IMG/VR virus record: IMGVR_UViG_3300027749_002876
Location: 434,001 to 498,000 of that record
Length of the DNA: 64,000 nt
Direction: 5' to 3' (one strand)
Shown here: one piece after another, positions 1 to 39,309 of the stretch
How the letters are laid out: every line of letters begins with the position of its first letter
How positions within the stretch are numbered: position 1 is the stretch's first letter
Notes under the pieces: model-generated
Databases searched by the model: none
Told to the model about the DNA's origin: nothing
What the model saw: the letters and a program-made list of their open reading frames with translations, nothing else
Translations under genes and position numbers: made by a program

Positions 1-102
1 AAAGAATCAACTACAAGTATGCGTGTGTTTGATTTAGAAAAGAATGAGTGGCGCAGTTTCACTCTTAAAAAAGTAAAACAAGTTAATATCTCTATACCAT
101 GA
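1..102 (+). CDS. 3' end of a WYL-like/SH3-fold phage protein (DUF2693-like), partial
   Basis: Frame 1 reads KESTTSMRVFDLEKNEWRSFTLKKVKQVNISIP*; VFDLEKxxWRSF is typical of this family; stop overlaps the next ATG (ATGA). Confidence 0.55.
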   Translation, partial: KESTTSMRVFDLEKNEWRSFTLKKVKQVNISIP

Positions 103-1427
103 ATGACTTTGAGCAAGGTAACATTCACTATATGGCTAAAGAATATTATGAAGCCACAGAATGTTATAAAAGATTTTTACAACAAGAGCCAGAAAATTAT
201 GTAGCATTACATAATCTTGGTATCGCTCTTTGTCAACTAGGACAGGATCAAGAAGCATTAGAATGTTTTGAATTACCTTGTAAACATGATTATGCAGAGA
301 GTTGGCTTAGTCGCGGTACCGCCTTGCGTAATCTGGGTAGATACAAAGAAGCATTAATTACCTTTGCACATACATTTGCATTGGATCCTAAACATCCCAC
401 TGCATACAGTAACTACGGGAATACATTACGTGAGTTTGGATTACCTGAACTTGCTGTACCATTCTTAAAAATAGCACAAGAACTAAAACCAAATGATGTA
501 AACTATGAATTGAATGAATCAGTGTGTCATTTGATGAAAGGTGATTTAGTTGAAGGTTGGAAAAAATACAATGCTCGTTGGTATTATCAAAGTGATATCA
601 GTTTTAAACCTAATTTACCCGGTCCCGAATATGATGGTTCACAAGACATTGTGAATAAAAGAGTATTGGTATATTATGAACAAGGGTTTGGTGATAGCAT
701 ACAATTTATTCGTTTCATTAACGTATTAAAACAAAAAGGTGCTATCGTTTTATTGATAACTAAACCTCAATTGTATGATTTGTTTAAGTTTAATTTTCCT
801 GATTTGTTAGTATTAAATGCAGATGAACACTTACCTGTATATAATTTTCATGTAGCACTGATGGATCTTCCCAAATGCTTTGGTACTACAATTAATACTA
901 TACCTAGTCCATCTGCATATTTGGATGTAGATGAAGGAATGAAACAAACATGGAAACAACTATTAGGCCCTAAAACAAAGAAACGTATTGGGTTACTATC
1001 TAGTCCAAATAAGGTTGCATTCATATCTCGTTTTCGTAGGATAGAGTTAGAAAAGTTATTGTCAATTGTAAGTGATGAATATGAATTCGTTAGTCTATCA
1101 TATGAAGTAGATGAACAAATATTAGAATTGTTAGCAAAATACAATGTTAAAACATTCCATGAAAATATATCAGGCTTCTACAATACAGCAGGATTGATTA
1201 GCCAATTAGATTTAGTGATATCAATTGATACCGTTATACCACACTTATCCGGAGCACTTGGTATACCCACATGGGTGATGTTAACTGATTACGGTTGTGA
1301 TTGGCGATGGTTTATGAACCGAAATGATAGCCCATTCTACAGTTGTATGAGGTTGTTCCGTCAAACAAATGGTACATGGGATACTGTACTAGAATCTATA
1401 AAACTAGAACTACAAAATTTTAGTTGA
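99..1427 (+). CDS. TPR-repeat protein fused to a GT-B (GT9-like) glycosyltransferase domain
   Basis: N-terminal TPR helices (ALHNLGIAL, AYSNYGNTL); C-terminal EQGFGDSIQFIRF, DLVISIDT-HLSGALG-PTWVML, DWRW motifs. Confidence 0.85.
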   Translation: MNDFEQGNIHYMAKEYYEATECYKRFLQQEPENYVALHNLGIALCQLGQDQEALECFELPCKHDYAESWLSRGTALRNLGRYKEALITFAHTFALDPKHPTAYSNYGNTLREFGLPELAVPFLKIAQELKPNDVNYELNESVCHLMKGDLVEGWKKYNARWYYQSDISFKPNLPGPEYDGSQDIVNKRVLVYYEQGFGDSIQFIRFINVLKQKGAIVLLITKPQLYDLFKFNFPDLLVLNADEHLPVYNFHVALMDLPKCFGTTINTIPSPSAYLDVDEGMKQTWKQLLGPKTKKRIGLLSSPNKVAFISRFRRIELEKLLSIVSDEYEFVSLSYEVDEQILELLAKYNVKTFHENISGFYNTAGLISQLDLVISIDTVIPHLSGALGIPTWVMLTDYGCDWRWFMNRNDSPFYSCMRLFRQTNGTWDTVLESIKLELQNFS

Positions 1428-1453
1428 CATAAATACGTTTCCTATGCTATAAT
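1424..1453 (+). promoter_or_regulatory. sigma70-type promoter, probably giving a leaderless mRNA
   Basis: TTGACA 1424-1429, 18-nt spacer, TATAAT 1448-1453; ATG at 1461. Confidence 0.75.
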
Positions 1454-1460
1454 ATGCATT

Positions 1461-1619
1461 ATGAAACGAAAAATCTTATCTTTTACTGTTGAACAGCCCA
1501 AACATCGGGCCCACAAAGTGTTGTTTTCTAGCAACACTCCGTTCAAACCTAAGGTCGTACAGTCCAAAAAAGGTCTGTACATTCGTAAACCCAAACATCC
1601 AAAACTCAACGAAATTTGA
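1461..1619 (+). CDS. ArfA-like (alternative ribosome-rescue factor) small basic protein, 52 aa, not in the ORF track
   Basis: Hand translation MKRKILSFTVEQPKHRAHKVLFSSNTPFKPKVVQSKKGLYIRKPKHPKLNEI; resembles the ArfA core LF-R-V-KKGKGSY-RK-KH. Confidence 0.55.
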   Translation: MKRKILSFTVEQPKHRAHKVLFSSNTPFKPKVVQSKKGLYIRKPKHPKLNEI

Positions 1620-1659
1620 CAACAAATGGTGTTGGGTATATAATAGAGTCTTATTCAGT
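1616..1659 (+). promoter_or_regulatory. early promoter-leader repeat copy
   Basis: TTGACA 1616-1621, 17 nt, TATAAT 1639-1644, leader AGAGTCTTATTCAGT. Confidence 0.85.
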
Positions 1660-1673
1660 CAAAAGGAGTTCAA

Positions 1674-1949
1674 ATGAACATCAAGCAAATTAATACTGCT
1701 ATCATGCAGGGTGACTTCACTAACGAAGAATTGAATAGCATCGGTGATGCAATGCGTTTTGCCCGTGCCCAACTAGTAGTACGAAACAAATCGGCATTGA
1801 CGATCGGTTCCAATGTGAAATTCACAAGTTCAACCCGTGGTACAATCTCCGGTGTTGTAAAGAAAATCAATCGTAAATTTATTATTGTAGATCAGCCGGG
1901 TCAGTTCCGTAGTTGGAAAGTGCCCGCTAACATGTTGGAGGTATTGTAA
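1674..1949 (+). CDS. hypothetical early protein (possible SH3-like C-terminus)
   Basis: 91 aa; AAGGAG RBS; own promoter. Confidence 0.75.
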   Translation: MNIKQINTAIMQGDFTNEELNSIGDAMRFARAQLVVRNKSALTIGSNVKFTSSTRGTISGVVKKINRKFIIVDQPGQFRSWKVPANMLEVL

Positions 1950-2122
1950 TGAGCAAGATGGCTAATCTGTATATGGAGATTGAGGAAATGCTTGACAAAG
2001 GCACACATCCTGCAACTATCTCCGCGGTGCTTGATGTACCGGTGATTTTTATCTATGATGTAGTAGAATCTATTGAAGGTCAGACTGAAGAATTTAGTCC
2101 TTTTAGGACAATAAATTCTTAA
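1949..2122 (+). CDS. hypothetical protein, 57 aa
   Basis: TAATG overlap with upstream stop; MSKMANLYMEIEEMLDKG... fills the gap to the next promoter. Confidence 0.6.
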   Translation: MSKMANLYMEIEEMLDKGTHPATISAVLDVPVIFIYDVVESIEGQTEEFSPFRTINS

Positions 2123-2127
2123 AAAGG

Positions 2128-2171
2128 TTGACAATAAATCGGTTTGGGTATACAATAGAATCTTAGACAGT
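2128..2171 (+). promoter_or_regulatory. early promoter-leader repeat copy
   Basis: TTGACA 2128-2133, 17 nt, TACAAT 2151-2156, leader AGAATCTTAGACAGT. Confidence 0.85.
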
Positions 2172-2188
2172 AAAGAAAAGGAATAGAA

Positions 2189-2320
2189 ATGTACAAAGCA
2201 AATGGTTATTTGTTTAGAAGTGTTGAAGCACTAGGTGAATACTTAAAGATTCATTCTGGCAAAGATATTGTTGTCACCTATGTCACCGAGTATTTTCTTG
2301 GTGACCCGATGGAACAATAA
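2189..2320 (+). CDS. hypothetical protein, 43 aa
   Basis: AAAGGA RBS; MYKANGYLFRSVEALGEYL...; lies exactly between two promoter copies. Confidence 0.55.
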   Translation: MYKANGYLFRSVEALGEYLKIHSGKDIVVTYVTEYFLGDPMEQ

Positions 2321-2321
2321 C

Positions 2322-2365
2322 TTGACAATAAATGGATTTGGTGTTATAATAGAATCTTAGACAGT
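2322..2365 (+). promoter_or_regulatory. early promoter-leader repeat copy
   Basis: TTGACA 2322-2327, 17 nt, TATAAT 2345-2350, leader AGAATCTTAGACAGT. Confidence 0.9.
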
Positions 2366-2382
2366 AAAGAAAAGGAAACAAA

Positions 2383-2799
2383 ATGGCTTATATGAATCAG
2401 GAACGCAAAGCAAAGATTACTAAAATGCTTAAGCCCATAATGGCTAAGTACAAAGTTAAAGGCTCACTGAGTGTCCGCAATCATAGTACTATTGTATTAA
2501 CGCTCAAATCGGGTGCTATTGACTTTATTGGCAACAGTAATCGGGTTTGCGGTAATGACTTTTATCAGGTACAACGTGGCTTCAAACCTACTACAAATGG
2601 TTACGATCAGGTGAATCCTTACTGGTTTCAGGATCACTATGATGGCAAGGCTAAATCTTTCTTAACTGAAGCATTCAAAGCATTGAAGTCGGCCGATTGG
2701 TATGACGAATCCGATGCAATGATTGACTATTTCAACACTGCCTACTATGTCGATGTTAACATTGGCAAATGGGACAAGCCCTATAGTTTGGAAAAATAA
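2383..2799 (+). CDS. conserved phage hypothetical protein
   Basis: 138 aa; RBS and own promoter; DWYDESD-MIDYF-AYY-VNIGKW motif. Confidence 0.8.
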   Translation: MAYMNQERKAKITKMLKPIMAKYKVKGSLSVRNHSTIVLTLKSGAIDFIGNSNRVCGNDFYQVQRGFKPTTNGYDQVNPYWFQDHYDGKAKSFLTEAFKALKSADWYDESDAMIDYFNTAYYVDVNIGKWDKPYSLEK

Positions 2800-2901
2800 A
2801 TGTTAGAAAAAATCTTTACATTTATTGGTACCCACGCTGAATCAATCGGCTGGCTATCGCTAGTCTTAATAGGTCTTTCACTATTGTGGAAGAACAACTA
2901 A
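2800..2901 (+). CDS. small membrane peptide, 33 aa
   Basis: MLEKIFTFIGTHAESIGWLSLVLIGLSLLWKNN abuts upstream stop. Confidence 0.4.
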   Translation: MLEKIFTFIGTHAESIGWLSLVLIGLSLLWKNN

Positions 2902-2919
2902 TAATGGGTAACACAATGG

Positions 2920-2948
2920 TTGACAACAATGTCCGTTTGTGTTATCAT
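2920..2948 (+). promoter_or_regulatory. sigma70-type promoter
   Basis: TTGACA 2920-2925, 17 nt, TATCAT 2943-2948. Confidence 0.7.
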
Positions 2949-3012
2949 TATAACAGTGCTGAGAAGTTATCGGCACATTTTTTAAACTTAGCTTTTATTT
3001 AAAGGAAACACA

Positions 3013-3393
3013 ATGGCTAATTCTAATCAAACTTTCAAAATCGCTGGTATTACTATTCACAATGGTAACGCTAAAGTTCGTTTCACAGATGACATGGTCC
3101 GTCGTATCAAGCAGTTCACTAAAGGTGGTGCTTCACGTGTGGACTTTGTTGAGCTACCTTCAGAAATGACTAAGGTAGAAGCATTGAAGTATCTTGCTAC
3201 ATTACCTGAGTTTGCTAGCGCAAGCGATCAGGCAACTATCAGTGATACACTAGAAGATAAAACTAAAGAGGCAAGTAAAGGTGAAGTTAAAGTAAAAGCT
3301 TCCAAAACAAAGCCAAGCATTGATGCAATTAAAGCACGTGCTAAAAAATCACAAGTGTCCGCAGAAGATGTATTGTCTGCTATTGCTGAATAA
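3013..3393 (+). CDS. hypothetical protein
   Basis: 126 aa; AAAGGA RBS. Confidence 0.75.
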   Translation: MANSNQTFKIAGITIHNGNAKVRFTDDMVRRIKQFTKGGASRVDFVELPSEMTKVEALKYLATLPEFASASDQATISDTLEDKTKEASKGEVKVKASKTKPSIDAIKARAKKSQVSAEDVLSAIAE

Positions 3394-3418
3394 TTAATAG
3401 GGCTTAGGCCCTCTTACT

Positions 3419-3631
3419 ATGAACATGAATTTATCTACATTTCGCCGCTCATTTAATCCTCGTAGAGAATTTAATCCAGCAAATAAAAAAGATTTGCTAG
3501 AATTTAAATACTTTAAACAGAAAGGCAAATGGAAGAATGGTTGTCCATTCTATTTAGAGGATCCATTCGTTGAGATTCCGGCAATGTGTGAAAACAAATT
3601 CACAACTTATATGCTAGAGAAGATGAAATAA
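3419..3631 (+). CDS. hypothetical protein
   Basis: 70 aa ORF ending at a terminator. Confidence 0.65.
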   Translation: MNMNLSTFRRSFNPRREFNPANKKDLLEFKYFKQKGKWKNGCPFYLEDPFVEIPAMCENKFTTYMLEKMK

Positions 3632-3657
3632 AAATGCCCCTTAATTGGGGCATTTTT
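3630..3657. terminator. bidirectional intrinsic terminator between convergent genes
   Basis: AAAAATGCCCC-TTAATT-GGGGCATTTTT perfect inverted repeat. Confidence 0.85.
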
Positions 3658-4492
3658 ATGGGTTATTAACTGATTTGATAATCCAGTAATCATCGCTCAT
3701 TGATGGACTGATGATATCAAATGGCATATAGAAATATCCATTATCACCCCAATTAGTTCCCCAACTGTTTCTTGCAATCAATACTTTTTTACTTTTATTG
3801 TATCCAACAATCAATACAGCATGACCACCTAATAGTACTTCACGTTTTGTATTTGGATAAGGCATGACACCTGTTCTAGCAACATTATTTGACATAAAAC
3901 TTGTATAGACATTGAAACCCATAATGATTGGATATCCATTTGACAATGCATCTATAAAGCCTTCTAAATCGGCTATACGTTCATAGCGAGTTACCTTACG
4001 ATTTAGTGCATCATTTTTTGCTTCAATGATTGGTTCATACCTGTATTTCTTAATATCATACGGCCAATAACTTTCTAAGCTTGCTCCATATTTATTAGTT
4101 GCTTTGATACCATCACGTATATAAGCACCGCTATCATAATTAACTGTACCTAATATTAATCGTTCATAATAGTATATGAACAGTCTACTGATATCCCTAT
4201 AGTTGCCATTGCGTTTGTTTAATAATTCTATTGCGCCGGCAATTGCCTGTCCAGTACAGCTTCCAAGACTACCTTGATTTTCGATTGGACTACAATAATT
4301 TCTTAAATCAATACTATTAGGACTTGTCTTTGTTGTTAGTTGGTATTTGTAATCTCTACTATCTAATTTATCAGGTACCCATTGCAAATTGAGTTTGTTT
4401 GCAAGTGTCCTAACTTTGATTTTTTTAGTGACAGGCTTATTAAAGGTATGATCCTCGTCCGTGTTTATAATCGTGCGAGGATCTTGCTTCAT
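3656..4492 (-). CDS. papain-family (C1) cysteine protease
   Basis: QGSLGSCTG (catalytic Cys), GGHAVLIVGY (His), RNSWG (Asn). Confidence 0.9.
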   Translation of the reverse strand: MKQDPRTIINTDEDHTFNKPVTKKIKVRTLANKLNLQWVPDKLDSRDYKYQLTTKTSPNSIDLRNYCSPIENQGSLGSCTGQAIAGAIELLNKRNGNYRDISRLFIYYYERLILGTVNYDSGAYIRDGIKATNKYGASLESYWPYDIKKYRYEPIIEAKNDALNRKVTRYERIADLEGFIDALSNGYPIIMGFNVYTSFMSNNVARTGVMPYPNTKREVLLGGHAVLIVGYNKSKKVLIARNSWGTNWGDNGYFYMPFDIISPSMSDDYWIIKSVNNP

Positions 4493-4495
4493 ATT

Positions 4496-5233
4496 TTATA
4501 AACCAAATCTTGCTTTGTTAGCATTCCAGCTGGTAGTAACTCCTGACTGACCAATAGCATTATCATATACTTTGACAATGGCCAATCGGCCGCCCCAGAA
4601 CCCACCTGAATCCCAACGAGTCATCAATCCATACCCGATTCCAGGGTTGGCAGCGGCACCGGGTGGAGCATTGGCCGTCTGTACCAGGGTGTTGTTTACA
4701 TACAAGTTGAGAGTAGTGCCATTAAATGTGCCCACAATCTGATACCAGGCACCGGGTGTTAGTGAGTACCCAGACGGAGTAGTTTGAAATCCCGCACTAT
4801 AATACCATGCCTGTAAATCAGTATCAGCACCGTTGGCACCCAGTCCAAGATTGATAGTGCCGCCGCCGTATGGGTATTCTGTGAATATGTTGGGGCCAGC
4901 AGAAGTATTAGTACCATCATAGTAATGCCACGCTTCAATACTCCAGTTAGCAAGTGTACCTAAGTTTGTAGGGCTGGCTGCATACTGTCCTGAACCAGGA
5001 TCGAACTGTATGTATCCACCGTTGGCACTGTTGTATGTGGGACCATTAACAAGAGTAAATGTCATTGATCCAATGGTGTCAGTCCAGGTAGAGTAGCCCC
5101 CTGCTCCAGGATAACTTGCAGGGTTGCCTGCATCTAAACTCAACAATAAGTTCGCAACAGGGCCTGCGCTACCTATGTCGATACCGCCCCCGATATCTAT
5201 TCCTTCGCCTATTCTTATTCCCGGTGCTACCAT
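4496..5233 (-). CDS. LamG/concanavalin-A-like domain protein with Gly-patterned N-terminal leader
   Basis: LLLSLDAGNPASYPG, WSIEAW, WYQIVGTFNGTTLNLYVNN, WNANKARFGL; N-term GIRIGEGIDIGGGIDIG. Confidence 0.85.
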   Translation of the reverse strand: MVAPGIRIGEGIDIGGGIDIGSAGPVANLLLSLDAGNPASYPGAGGYSTWTDTIGSMTFTLVNGPTYNSANGGYIQFDPGSGQYAASPTNLGTLANWSIEAWHYYDGTNTSAGPNIFTEYPYGGGTINLGLGANGADTDLQAWYYSAGFQTTPSGYSLTPGAWYQIVGTFNGTTLNLYVNNTLVQTANAPPGAAANPGIGYGLMTRWDSGGFWGGRLAIVKVYDNAIGQSGVTTSWNANKARFGL

Positions 5234-35900: not shown

Positions 35901-37796
35901 TTAATTAGATTCTTTTACTTCCGCATCAACTACATTGTCATTAGCATTCTTTGCTTCTGTAGCTTCTTTGGCTTTTTGTTCCTCATCATATTTGATTTTT
36001 GTGATGGGACTAATTGCTTCGTATAAGTCTTTGATTTTGTTTTCAATTTCTTCTACGTCTGTTCCAGCTAATGCAACTTCCAATGCATCAATGCTATTAG
36101 ATGCTTTTTCTTTTTCTTCTGCTGTAACACTATCTCCGTGCTTCTCGTAGTCTTTACGGAAACTGTTCAATGTTGATTCGCCGTTATTTTTTGCTTGAAT
36201 AAATTTAACTTGTTTGGCATCAGATTCAGCATTTGCTTCAGCATCATTAACCATTTGTTGAATTTCTCTTTCAGTTAGTCCTGAATCAGATTTGATAGTA
36301 ATCTTATTCTCTTTGCCTGTACCTTTATCTTTGGCACTTACATTAAGAATACCATTTGCATCAATATCTAACGTGACTTCAATTTGAGGAACACCACGCA
36401 TTGATGGAGGAATGCCCTCTAAATTAAATTCACCTAATATCTTATTGTATGTAAACAAATCACGTTCACCTTGTGCAACCTTAATAGTTACTGCAGGTTG
36501 ATTGTCTTCCGCTGTACTAAACACTTGACTATGCTTAGTTGGGATAGTTGTATTCTTCTTAATCAATTTAGTGAATACACCGCCACTTGTTTCAATACCC
36601 AAACTCAGTGGTGTCACATCCAATAACAATACGTCAGTGCGTTCACCGGCTAATACACTACCTTGAAGTGCCGCACCTGCCGCCACTGCTTCATCAGGAT
36701 TAACATCTTTGCGTGGTGCCTGACCAAACAACTTCTCAACTGTTTCTTGTACTTTGGGCATACGTGTCATACCACCAACAAGAATAACCTCATCAATGTC
36801 AGCAATTTTAACACCGGCATCTTGTATAGCTTGTTGACATGGTTTGATACTACGTTGAATCAATTCATCAACTAACAATTCTAATTTAGCACGACTTAAT
36901 TTAACATTTAAGTGTTTAGGTCCACTAACATCGGCTGTGATATATGGCAAGTTAACATCTGTTTGAGCACTACTACTTAACTCAATCTTTGCTTTCTCAG
37001 CCGCATCTTTCATCCGTTGCAATGCCAATACATCTTTGGTTAAGTCAATACCGTTGTCTTTCTTAAACTCATCAACTAAGAAGTCCATGATACGTTGGTC
37101 AAAGTCTTCGCCACCTAAGAACGTATCACCATTTGTTGATAATACTTCAATTTGTGTTTCACCATCAACATCTGCTAATTCAATAATACTTACATCAAAT
37201 GTACCACCACCTAAGTCATAAACAGCAATCTTACGGTCCGTTTTATCTTTTTTATCTACACCATATGCTAGTGCAGCCGCAGTAGGTTCGTTGATAATAC
37301 GCAATACTTCTAGTCCTGCAATACGTCCTGCGTCTTTAGTTGCTTGACGTTGGCTATCATTGAAGTAAGCTGGAACTGTAATAACTGCTTGAGTAACTGT
37401 TGTACCCAAATAGTCTTCAGCAGTCTTTTTCATCTTACGTAATACTTCAGCACTGATTTGCGGTGGTGCTAATTTTTGCCCATTAGACTCAACCCATGCA
37501 TCGCCATTGTCTGCCTTAATGATTTTGTATGGCATCAAGTCAATATCTTTTTGAACCGCTTGTTCTGTGAACTTACGACCAATCAATCGCTTGGCAGCAT
37601 AGATTGTATTCTTTGGGTTTGTAACTGATTGACGTTTGGCACTTGCACCTACTAATATCTCATCATTGGCATAGGCAACGATTGAGGGTGTAGTTCTTGC
37701 ACCTTCACTGTTTTCAATTATTTTGGGGATTCCGTTTTCAATAACGGCTACGCAGGAATTTGTGGTTCCGAGGTCTATTCCAATTACTTTGCTCAT
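35901..37796 (-). CDS. dnaK: chaperone DnaK (Hsp70)
   Basis: [41 protein letters not shown]; AAGGAG RBS supports the start at 37796 (631 aa). Confidence 0.98.
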
Positions 37797-37862
37797 TTTT
37801 TCTCCTTTATAAAGCAAGATTCTAATTTCAGACCCGATAATCGGCATCTGAGTACATATTTA
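37797..37862 (-). promoter_or_regulatory. TAAATA promoter plus ROSE-like RNA thermometer leader of dnaK
   Basis: TAAATA 37862-37857; mRNA UCAGAU-G-CCGA-UUA-UCGG-GUCUGA hairpin, then CUU(G)CUU-UAUA-AAGGAG. Confidence 0.7.
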
Positions 37863-38110: not shown

Positions 38111-39309
38111 ACTATAACTGTTGGCTCCAAAATTTGTTTTCTATCTATATTTATGTTTAGTACATTATTATCACGGTACTTTTTAGTGTAGAACATGTGA
38201 GGCATCAATACACGCTCAATTTCAGTATGCAATCCACGTGCCCCTGTCTTAAGTGACAATGTATTCTCTGCTAATTGGTCTAGTGCATCTACCGTAAAGC
38301 TTAAATCAATGTTGTCCAAGCTTAACAAGTACTTGTATTGGTCAATATAGTTATTTTTGATTCCGGTCAATACTGTGATTAACTCATCTTTTGTCAAATC
38401 TTCCACATTGACTGTTGTAGTAAAACGACCAATGAACTCGGGAATCATACCAAATTTAACTAAGTCATCTGGACTAACATTACTTAAATTACCATCAGTG
38501 TTGGCGTTTTTAATTTGAGCGCCAAATCCAATACTTGTACCGTTTTCACGATTGCTAACAATACCCTTTAATCCAACAAATGCACCGCCAGCAATGAATA
38601 AGATATTCTTAGTATTGATTTCAATCATATCTCCACCGGGATGTTTACGTCCACCACCAGCTGGAATACGACAAACAGTACCTTCAACCAGTTTAAGTAA
38701 TGCTTGTTGAACACCTTCACCTGACACATCACGTGTGATATTAGCACTTTCACCTTTACGGGCAATCTTGTCAATCTCGTCAATGAATACAATGCCACGC
38801 TCGGCTAGTTTAACGTCACCACCTGCGGCATTGAGTAGCATACTAATCATTGATTCAACATCATCACCTACATAACCTGCTTCTGTAATACTTGTTGCAT
38901 CTGCTACGATGAAGGGCACTTTAAGATATTTTGCTACTGTTTTAGCAAGTAAGGTTTTACCTGAACCAGTTGGTCCTACTAGTAATACATTACCTTTAGA
39001 AATCTCTAAGTCTTTAGGTGGTTTGTTGATACGTTTATAGTGATTAGCAATAGCCACACTTAATACTTTTTTAGCATTGTGTTGACCAACTACATGAGTA
39101 TCAAGGAAATCTTTAATAGACTCTGGATCATATGATACTGCATCTTCTATTACAAATTCGTTCTTGGATTCATCGTCTACCATTAATGTATTGCATAATT
39201 CTACGCAATCACTACAGATAGCTACTTCTTCACTTACAATCAATTTTTTTACATTGTCTTTGTGGTTATCACAAAAGGAACAACGGTTGAGTTTATTTTC
39301 TGTTGACAT
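38107..39309 (-). CDS. clpX: ATP-dependent Clp protease ATPase subunit ClpX
   Basis: CSFC...CSDC zinc domain, [31 protein letters not shown] loop. Confidence 0.97.

Follow-up and report, generated by a model that had tools for sequence, protein, structure and literature searches.

The stretch of DNA considered here (the window) comprises 64,000 nucleotides, positions 434001-498000 of the 524,565-bp IMG/VR record IMGVR_UViG_3300027749_002876, and coordinates are given in window numbering unless they are assigned to the record. Close to its beginning lies an open reading frame (ORF) for a basic protein of 52 residues, P0001 (MKRKILSFTVEQPKHRAHKVLFSSNTPFKPKVVQSKKGLYIRKPKHPKLNEI), which contains 14 K/R against 2 D/E and has an isoelectric point of 10.9. 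The comparison of this protein and its relatives with known families supports its assignment as a distant, diverged phage relative of the alternative ribosome-rescue factor ArfA, and we lean towards the view that it is a phage-borne ArfA homologue that works by the rescue mechanism laid out below. ArfA is the textbook backup factor, produced only when transfer-messenger RNA (tmRNA) fails. The phage, however, probably makes an always-on rescue factor, because kinship with ArfA is combined here with a normal stop codon at the active length and with a strong promoter without a leader.

Judged by its conservation, the 52-residue ORF is a real, conserved gene. A word-indexed search of metagenomes yielded 36 close protein homologues of 50-63 residues, and a profile search of 1.84 billion cluster representatives yielded 175 small proteins at E ≤ 1e-3; the homologues are labelled 'hypothetical protein' by the Joint Genome Institute (JGI). 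A close relative is encoded on 188 IMG/VR contigs, with conservation of both length and stop. Among 52 sequences (dS ~0.96), the median pairwise ratio of nonsynonymous to synonymous substitution rates (dN/dS) is 0.148 in frame versus 0.87 and 1.93 in the two other frames, and the variable sites of the alignment are mostly third codon positions. An RNA-level explanation of this conservation did not hold up, as the ORF region has no match in Rfam and neither the ORF nor its 3' flank shows a conserved RNA structure. A 7-bp hairpin (AGUGUUG/CAACACU) does occur inside the coding region at 1517-1538 (codons 19-26); its closing pair is A-U in 10 sequences and U-A in 9, at third codon positions, and this switch may reflect clade structure rather than selection on the stem. 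That there is no gene at all, and that the strong promoter precedes an ORF arisen by chance or transcribes a non-coding leader or a small RNA, is suggested by the small size of the ORF, by its lack of a Shine-Dalgarno (SD) sequence and by the lack of read support for it at ≥90% likeness in four metatranscriptomes. This alternative is nevertheless exceedingly improbable: dN/dS is 0.15 in frame against at least 0.87 out of frame with variation mostly at third positions, length and stop are kept in the 188 contigs, and RNA structure is not conserved. As far as sequence comparison reaches, the non-gene reading is refuted.

The kinship with ArfA is seen at the level of the family. A profile built from 145 diverse relatives retrieved six chains from 177,635 distinct PDB sequences, all of them ArfA (E 1.1e-3), and gave a single match in the six-frame translation of the Escherichia coli K-12 chromosome, which lies inside arfA (E 1.2e-3). 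This broader profile was needed, since a narrow family profile gave no PDB match. Alignment of the family with ArfA by hhalign, in which the ArfA side consisted of 24 enterobacterial ArfA sequences only, reached 93% probability (E 3e-7) and placed residues 14-52 opposite ArfA 12-55, spanning both the release factor 2 (RF2)-binding and the messenger RNA (mRNA)-channel regions. When the 145 relatives were compared individually with Pfam, 68 matched DUF7230 (best E 1.8e-8) and 18 gave weak matches to ArfA (best E 3e-6), and no other family recurred; among close relatives, 35 of 38 matched DUF7230. The DUF7230 model in turn finds arfA as its sole match in E. coli, which suggests that DUF7230 is an unrecognised ArfA branch. 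Two members bridge the families: P0165/P0310 is caught by the narrow profile and passes the Pfam ArfA threshold (27 versus 25.5 bits), and P0177 is named ArfA by IMG. Other searches were negative, including those of P0001 against PHROGs and NCBIfam, a six-frame search of the whole record with the Pfam ArfA model, tblastn searches of cultured phages with P0001, P0310 and P0061, and a megablast search with window positions 1-4000; tblastn of P0177 returned polymerase matches only, which were judged spurious.

It could be argued that P0001 is a generic basic nucleic-acid-binding protein or another unrelated small phage protein whose likeness to ArfA is convergent or compositional, given that it is a short K/R-rich peptide with weak single-sequence matches and that its ArfA-like role is a sequence-based prediction. 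Such an origin of the likeness is very unlikely. E. coli ArfA scores 21.5 bits against the hidden Markov model (HMM) of the family, whereas the best of 2,000 shuffles of ArfA scores 9.0 bits, and because composition-matched shuffles never come near the real score, basic composition is not the cause of the likeness. Furthermore, the match is position-specific over ~40 columns, hydrophobic positions included, ArfA is the sole match in a whole genome and in the whole PDB, and intermediates join both families. The original prediction, which had called the peptide ArfA-like and quoted an E. coli ArfA string that proved to be correct, is thereby upheld for the family as a whole.

The alignment can be read against the structure of the E. 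coli complex. Cryo-electron microscopy showed that ArfA residues 15-31 hold RF2, with L19, L24 and F25 touching W319, V198 and F217 (PMC5378476, PMC6299226); this hydrophobic patch binds RF2 W319 and the V198/F217 pocket (PMC5378476), while the basic tail occupies the empty mRNA channel (PMC5378476, PMC6299226). In P0001, the residues opposite L19/L24/F25 are L21, P27 and F28, which may contact RF2. E. coli ArfA and the phage family have in common a hydrophobic L-L/F...F segment and, after it, the pattern (K/R)x(K/R)V..K(K)..Y.R(K).KH, and residues 28-46 of P0001 read FKPKVVQSKKGLYIRKPKH. Position by position (ArfA/P0001), the two agree at L19/L21, L20/F22, D22/N25, F25/F28, R26/K29 and R28/K31 in the first part and at K33/K36, Y39/Y40, R41/R42, K44/K45 and H45/H46 in the second. 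The positively charged C-terminal segment is thus present, with K36, K37, R42, K43, K45 and H46 opposite ArfA K33-H45. Within the 145 diverse members, L21, F22, P27 and F28 are nearly invariant, the F28 column holds 132 F and 12 Y, and R42 is found in 145 of 145. Beyond the ArfA pattern, R16 and H18 are new conserved residues of the phage family.

The mature form of E. coli ArfA has 52-55 residues (PMC6299226), and P0001 with its 52 residues is alike in active length. After the Y-x-R-x-x-K-H motif P0001 continues for 6 residues, and the median of the family is 7 (142 relatives), compared to 7-10 in mature E. coli ArfA and 27, with a hydrophobic end, in the full-length form. The hydrophobic fraction of the last 12 residues is 0.25 in P0001 versus 0.58 in full-length ArfA, and the ends of the family are not hydrophobic. 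All relatives examined terminate in stop codons, and no arfA-type 3' hairpin is conserved over the ORF and its 3' flank. E. coli ArfA is made from an RNase III-cut non-stop mRNA and gated by tmRNA, whereas P0001 has a true stop and lacks the hydrophobic C-terminal tail. Since it combines the size of active ArfA with a true stop, the RNase III cut would be unneeded and tmRNA tagging would be absent. The earlier claim of a short form that ends in a real stop (here TGA) at about the active length therefore stands.

The gene lies behind a sigma-70-type promoter that matches the consensus at 12 of 12 positions (TTGACA-N18-TATAAT, with the spacer ending in TG). Seven nucleotides separate the -10 box from the A of the ATG at 1461, and no SD sequence was found upstream of this ATG. 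With the predicted start site, the mRNA would begin at the AUG or 1 nucleotide before it and would be leaderless. The layout is kept in 51 of 51 distinct close loci (TTGACA, 17-18 nucleotides, TATAAT or TATACT, 7-9 nucleotides, ATG), and an SD sequence is absent throughout. Distant relatives are often called too long, upstream through the promoter, which gives them 'VD...YN' N-termini. Across the record, the offset of the first long ORF behind 81 near-consensus promoters is bimodal, with the ATG 6-7 nucleotides from the -10 box at 11 sites, 26-34 nucleotides at ~40 and none at 8-14 nucleotides. Three distant family members have ordinary leaders with an SD sequence or translational coupling, and this, together with the genome-wide class, indicates that leaderless expression is a habit of the phage lineage and not of the protein family. 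The original prediction had placed a basic 52-residue ORF 7 nucleotides behind a TTGACA/TATAAT promoter and described it as leaderless; the former was recovered exactly, with the ATG at 1461 and the TGA at 1617-1619, and the latter holds as geometry. A known phage example of a leaderless mRNA is lambda cI transcribed from PRM, in which the start codon stands at the 5' end and there is no SD sequence. The gene for P0001 resembles it in the predicted position of the start codon at the 5' end of the transcript and in the lack of an SD sequence, but differs from it as a presumed immediate-early gene behind a consensus promoter, with a layout that recurs at 11 of 81 strong promoters.

The 11-gene leaderless class of the record includes genes for a DnaJ-like protein (269 residues) and a 5'-3' exonuclease-like protein (333 residues). 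Example promoter sites in the record are 191920(-), 245302(-), 269692(-), 430326(+), 483259(-) and 489203(-), and three leaderless genes retain the layout in both phage copies that the record contains (see below).

In the proposed mechanism, host RNA polymerase would read the gene from the consensus promoter as a leaderless mRNA (leader of 0-1 nucleotide), which 70S ribosomes would translate straight after infection. The 52-residue product, already of the active size, would be made without RNase III cutting and would not be tagged by tmRNA. By homology with ArfA, when a ribosome has stalled at the 3' end of a broken mRNA, the basic C-terminal half of the product (K36, Y40, R42, K45, H46) would slide into the vacant mRNA channel, and the hydrophobic segment (L21, F22, P27, F28) would hold host RF2 open, so that the nascent peptide is released. 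The phage would probably benefit by keeping a supply of usable ribosomes during the cleavage of host or phage mRNAs; the original prediction, which proposed that ribosomes stuck on degraded host mRNA are freed early in infection, would describe one part of this.

The interaction with RF2 was examined by structure prediction. The predicted complex of P0001 with E. coli RF2 has a median score of 0.45, compared to 0.01 for the best control (controls 0.00-0.01), and at least 64% of the contacts are shared between runs, with a partner predicted local distance difference test (pLDDT) score of at least 50. Of 78 solved complexes, 51 attain the mark for this score, as do 2 of 108 mismatched pairs, but a score of ≤0.60 is seen in no more than 5 of the 78 and in every one of the 4 mismatches with a pass. 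The result is thus a weak pass, and it may reflect memory of solved ArfA-RF2 structures. Of the checks named in the original prediction, structure prediction accordingly came out positive with E. coli RF2, but weakly so, and the HMM search against ArfA was divided: the family profile detects ArfA, but P0001 as a single sequence fails the Pfam ArfA model.

Several observations weigh against a role of P0001 as an ArfA-type rescue factor. P0001 has no match to Pfam ArfA (PF03889; threshold 25.5 bits) at E ≤ 10, and its only Pfam match, DUF7230 (PF23876; E 0.028), stays at 15 bits below the cut-off of 27. The first 15 residues of P0001 are unrelated to ArfA. The KGKGS motif is not intact (KKG-LY in P0001, KKGKGSY in ArfA), ArfA L24 is replaced by the near-invariant proline P27, and ArfA A18 stands opposite a valine, V20. 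The RF2 complex prediction is weak and was made with E. coli RF2, from which the RF2 of the phage's own host may differ. Finally, in four freshwater metatranscriptomes contigs cover the downstream genes, but no contig with ≥90% likeness covers 1420-1587. When the limit is lowered to 80%, the ArfA-like ORF is overlapped by two short contigs from relatives; such contigs show presence only, and DNA carry-over is possible. With regard to the KGKGS motif, its residues were reported to be dispensable for ArfA activity (PMC6299226), and the extra glycine column of the motif is filled in only 10 of the 145 relatives.

Two other functions compatible with ArfA ancestry have to be weighed. In the first, P0001 would descend from ArfA and bind ribosomes without activating release, much like the ArfA A18T variant, which binds but does not trigger hydrolysis and is inactive (PMC5378476). 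It would fill the empty mRNA channel, whether or not RF2 takes part, and in this way obstruct or divert the rescue systems of the host (tmRNA-SmpB, ArfA) or lower host translation. In the hhalign register, V20 is opposite A18 and has the same shape as the inactivating threonine; the N-terminal part, which forms the activating minidomain in ArfA, is unrelated in P0001; and a phage that carries its own tmRNA might favour one pathway over the other. However, the register around A18/V20 is ambiguous by one residue, and 22 of the 145 family members have an alanine in the A18-equivalent column. Moreover, the RF2-contacting positions L21, F22 and F28 are nearly invariant in the 145 members, which argues for a retained partner interface, and it is free ribosomes, not trapped ones, that profit the phage. 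We therefore regard a blocking role as unlikely.

In the second, P0001 would be a rescue factor of ArfA ancestry with another partner, either RF1 as well as RF2, as in ArfT, or another host factor. The divergence from ArfA (KGKGS absent, R16 and H18 as new invariant residues, L24 exchanged for P27) agrees with a change of partner, and ArfT is a precedent for a small basic rescue peptide that works with either release factor (PMC6299226). Against this, the equivalent of F25, which fits the RF2-specific V198/F217 pocket and is absent in ArfT, is kept as F28, and the complex prediction with RF2 passed, if weakly, with controls at 0.00-0.01; another partner is accordingly a quite unlikely solution. 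Rescue in concert with RF2 remains the preferred reading.

Among known systems, E. coli ArfA (YhdL; PF03889; PDB 5U4I, 5MDV, 5H5U) is one of the closest, a small basic peptide aligned over residues 12-55. P0001 differs from it in being phage-encoded, in its leaderless layout, in its broken KGKGS motif and unrelated N-terminal 15 residues, and in falling below the Pfam threshold. ArfA genes have been annotated in Pseudoalteromonas phage J2-1 (ATN93434.1), Brevundimonas phage Bambus (BAMBUS_05560) and Citromicrobium phage RXM (gp10) (PMC8953757), and the annotated ArfA of pelagiphage HTVC027P (gp30) is expressed early and late in infection (PMC12753301). Like P0001, the ArfA-like ORFs of cultured phages are short (39-60 residues) and end in real stops, and the J2-1 ArfA scores 27 bits against the profile of this family. 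Unlike P0001, most of them keep KGKGS-type motifs and are caught by standard annotation. Because phage ArfA genes are already annotated in cultured phages, the P0001 family is a divergent variant and not a new kind; what it adds is a useful annotation link between DUF7230, the best Pfam match of P0001 and a family of no assigned function, and ArfA, together with a twist in regulation that can be tested. No paper was found in the literature on the function of phage ArfAs, their stop-terminated form, the leaderless layout or DUF7230. In Salmonella phage Arash, an ArfA-like ORF (gp99c) is mis-annotated as 'ribosomal protein L2', and in Pseudomonas phage pf16 (131796-131912) and Ralstonia phage RsoM2USA (111850-111996) the ArfA-like frame is unannotated, with the called coding sequence on the opposite strand.

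ArfT of Francisella and BrfA of Bacillus are, like P0001, small rescue peptides with basic tails, and both depend on a release factor. Translation of ArfT ends at a stop codon on a normal mRNA. ArfT lacks a hydrophobic residue equivalent to F25, has a KKGGSTNKK-type tail and uses RF1 or RF2 (PMC6299226); in P0001, unlike in this published description of ArfT, F28 is conserved at the F25 position. No sequence relationship with ArfT or BrfA was detected, and neither is among the PDB profile matches.

The features of the locus are collected in Table 1. Two consecutive genes have as their stop the TGA within the -35 TTGACA of the following promoter, a very compact packing that is kept in relatives (...GAAATTTGACAA). 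The 91-residue gene that starts at 1674 has a normal SD leader (AAGGAG). The promoter and 5' untranslated region cassette at 1612-1662 (TTGACAACAAATGG...TATAAT...AAAGGAG) is highly repeated, being found with differing flanks on dozens of metatranscriptome contigs with a summed depth of >200 in one run, which suggests that it is an early-promoter module common to many genes of these phages. Further downstream, genes for a papain-family cysteine protease (Peptidase_C1, E 9e-18; 3656-4492 (-)) and a concanavalin-A-like lectin/glucanase-domain protein (Laminin_G_3, E 4e-18; 4496-5233 (-)) adjoin each other; both run against the direction of the early gene cluster. The window also encodes a full-length DnaK (Hsp70) homologue at 35904-37847 (-), 65-69% identical to proteobacterial DnaK; with the DnaJ-like gene mentioned above, the phage brings its own chaperones.

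Table 1. Promoter elements, ArfA-like gene and adjoining features in window numbering
Feature	Position	Strand	Remark
Upstream neighbour, 442-residue TPR-repeat protein	99-1427	+	Context only
-35 hexamer TTGACA	1424-1429	+	Its TGA (1425-1427) doubles as the stop of the upstream TPR gene
Extended -10 element TG-TATAAT	1446-1453	+	TG at 1446-1447, TATAAT at 1448-1453; 18-nucleotide spacer from the -35 hexamer
Predicted transcription start	1460-1461	+	7-8 nucleotides past the -10 box; from promoter geometry and the genome-wide offset distribution
ArfA-like gene (P0001)	1461-1619	+	52 codons and TGA stop at 1617-1619
Codons 16-33 (RAHKVLFSSNTPFKPKVV)	1506-1559	+	Opposite ArfA 14-30 in hhalign (RF2-contacting hydrophobic patch/A-site segment)
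Codons 34-46 (QSKKGLYIRKPKH)	1560-1598	+	Opposite the basic ArfA segment 31-45 (empty mRNA channel); GK of KGKGS deleted
Next perfect sigma-70-type promoter	1616-1644	+	-35 includes the stop codon of P0001 (TGA, 1617-1619); drives the 91-residue gene

The composition of the record itself bears on the number of ArfA-like genes per phage. A segment of 4,089 bp at record positions 172,924-177,012 recurs at 520,477-524,565 with 99.6% identity, which delimits a unit of 347,553 bp (172,924-520,476) that contains the window. The first 172.9 kb of the record are collinear with this unit, in inverted orientation and at 65-91% identity, and the collinearity continues through the junction of the unit. 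A related complete genome has 348,701 bp, and the CheckV percentages of fragments imply ~355 kb. The record is thus most likely a chimera, in which a complete 347,553-bp genome is fused to ~173 kb from a related phage in inverted orientation. A second ArfA-like copy, with 71% identity and the same layout, is located at 99364-99516 of the record. The possibility of two paralogues in one genome was rejected, since this copy sits in the joined-on part; with a chimeric record, it is the orthologue of a sister phage, and the 'duplicated' transfer RNA (tRNA) arrays of the record are then likewise orthologues from two phages. The 347.6-kb unit has a tRNA array of 25 genes.

The phage also encodes a permuted (two-piece) tmRNA of beta-proteobacterial type, outside the window at record positions 288480-288896 (-), with the tag ANDSQFSIAA and scores of 95 bits against RF01850 and 99 bits against RF04321 (Rfam). 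The same type is found in the related complete 348.7-kb genome at 38344-38717. No SmpB and no release factor (RF-1-domain gene) was found in the record, so that the phage, with a tmRNA but neither protein, relies on host partners. The type of tmRNA points to a beta-proteobacterial, freshwater host, and ArfA occurs in beta-proteobacteria. All inspected genomic contexts of family members look like phage. When 185,579 cellular genomes were scanned with one peptide pattern from the core alignment, 2 small contigs of metagenome-assembled genomes matched, and no cellular reservoir of the family was seen with this pattern.

The wider reading is that many phages, including this ~348-kb freshwater jumbo group, carry an ungated, constitutive ArfA without the non-stop/tmRNA switch, that the gene is here leaderless, immediate-early and paired with a phage tmRNA as a rescue module, and that DUF7230 is an unrecognised viral branch of ArfA. 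Taken jointly, these propositions are tentative and rather doubtful. If they are true, the viral rescue module would keep ribosomes free while mRNAs are cleaved by the host shut-off of the phage or by RNA-cutting host defences, and ribosome rescue would be a resource that viruses themselves supply, here with the gene accompanied by a phage tmRNA. If the phage copies are active, they represent the ArfA fold with its control removed, a natural experiment on why bacteria gate ArfA. In practical terms, Pfam DUF7230 and hundreds of small phage ORFs labelled 'hypothetical' gain a testable function, wrongly annotated copies in cultured phages come to light, and a jumbo phage yields a clear set of candidate leaderless genes.

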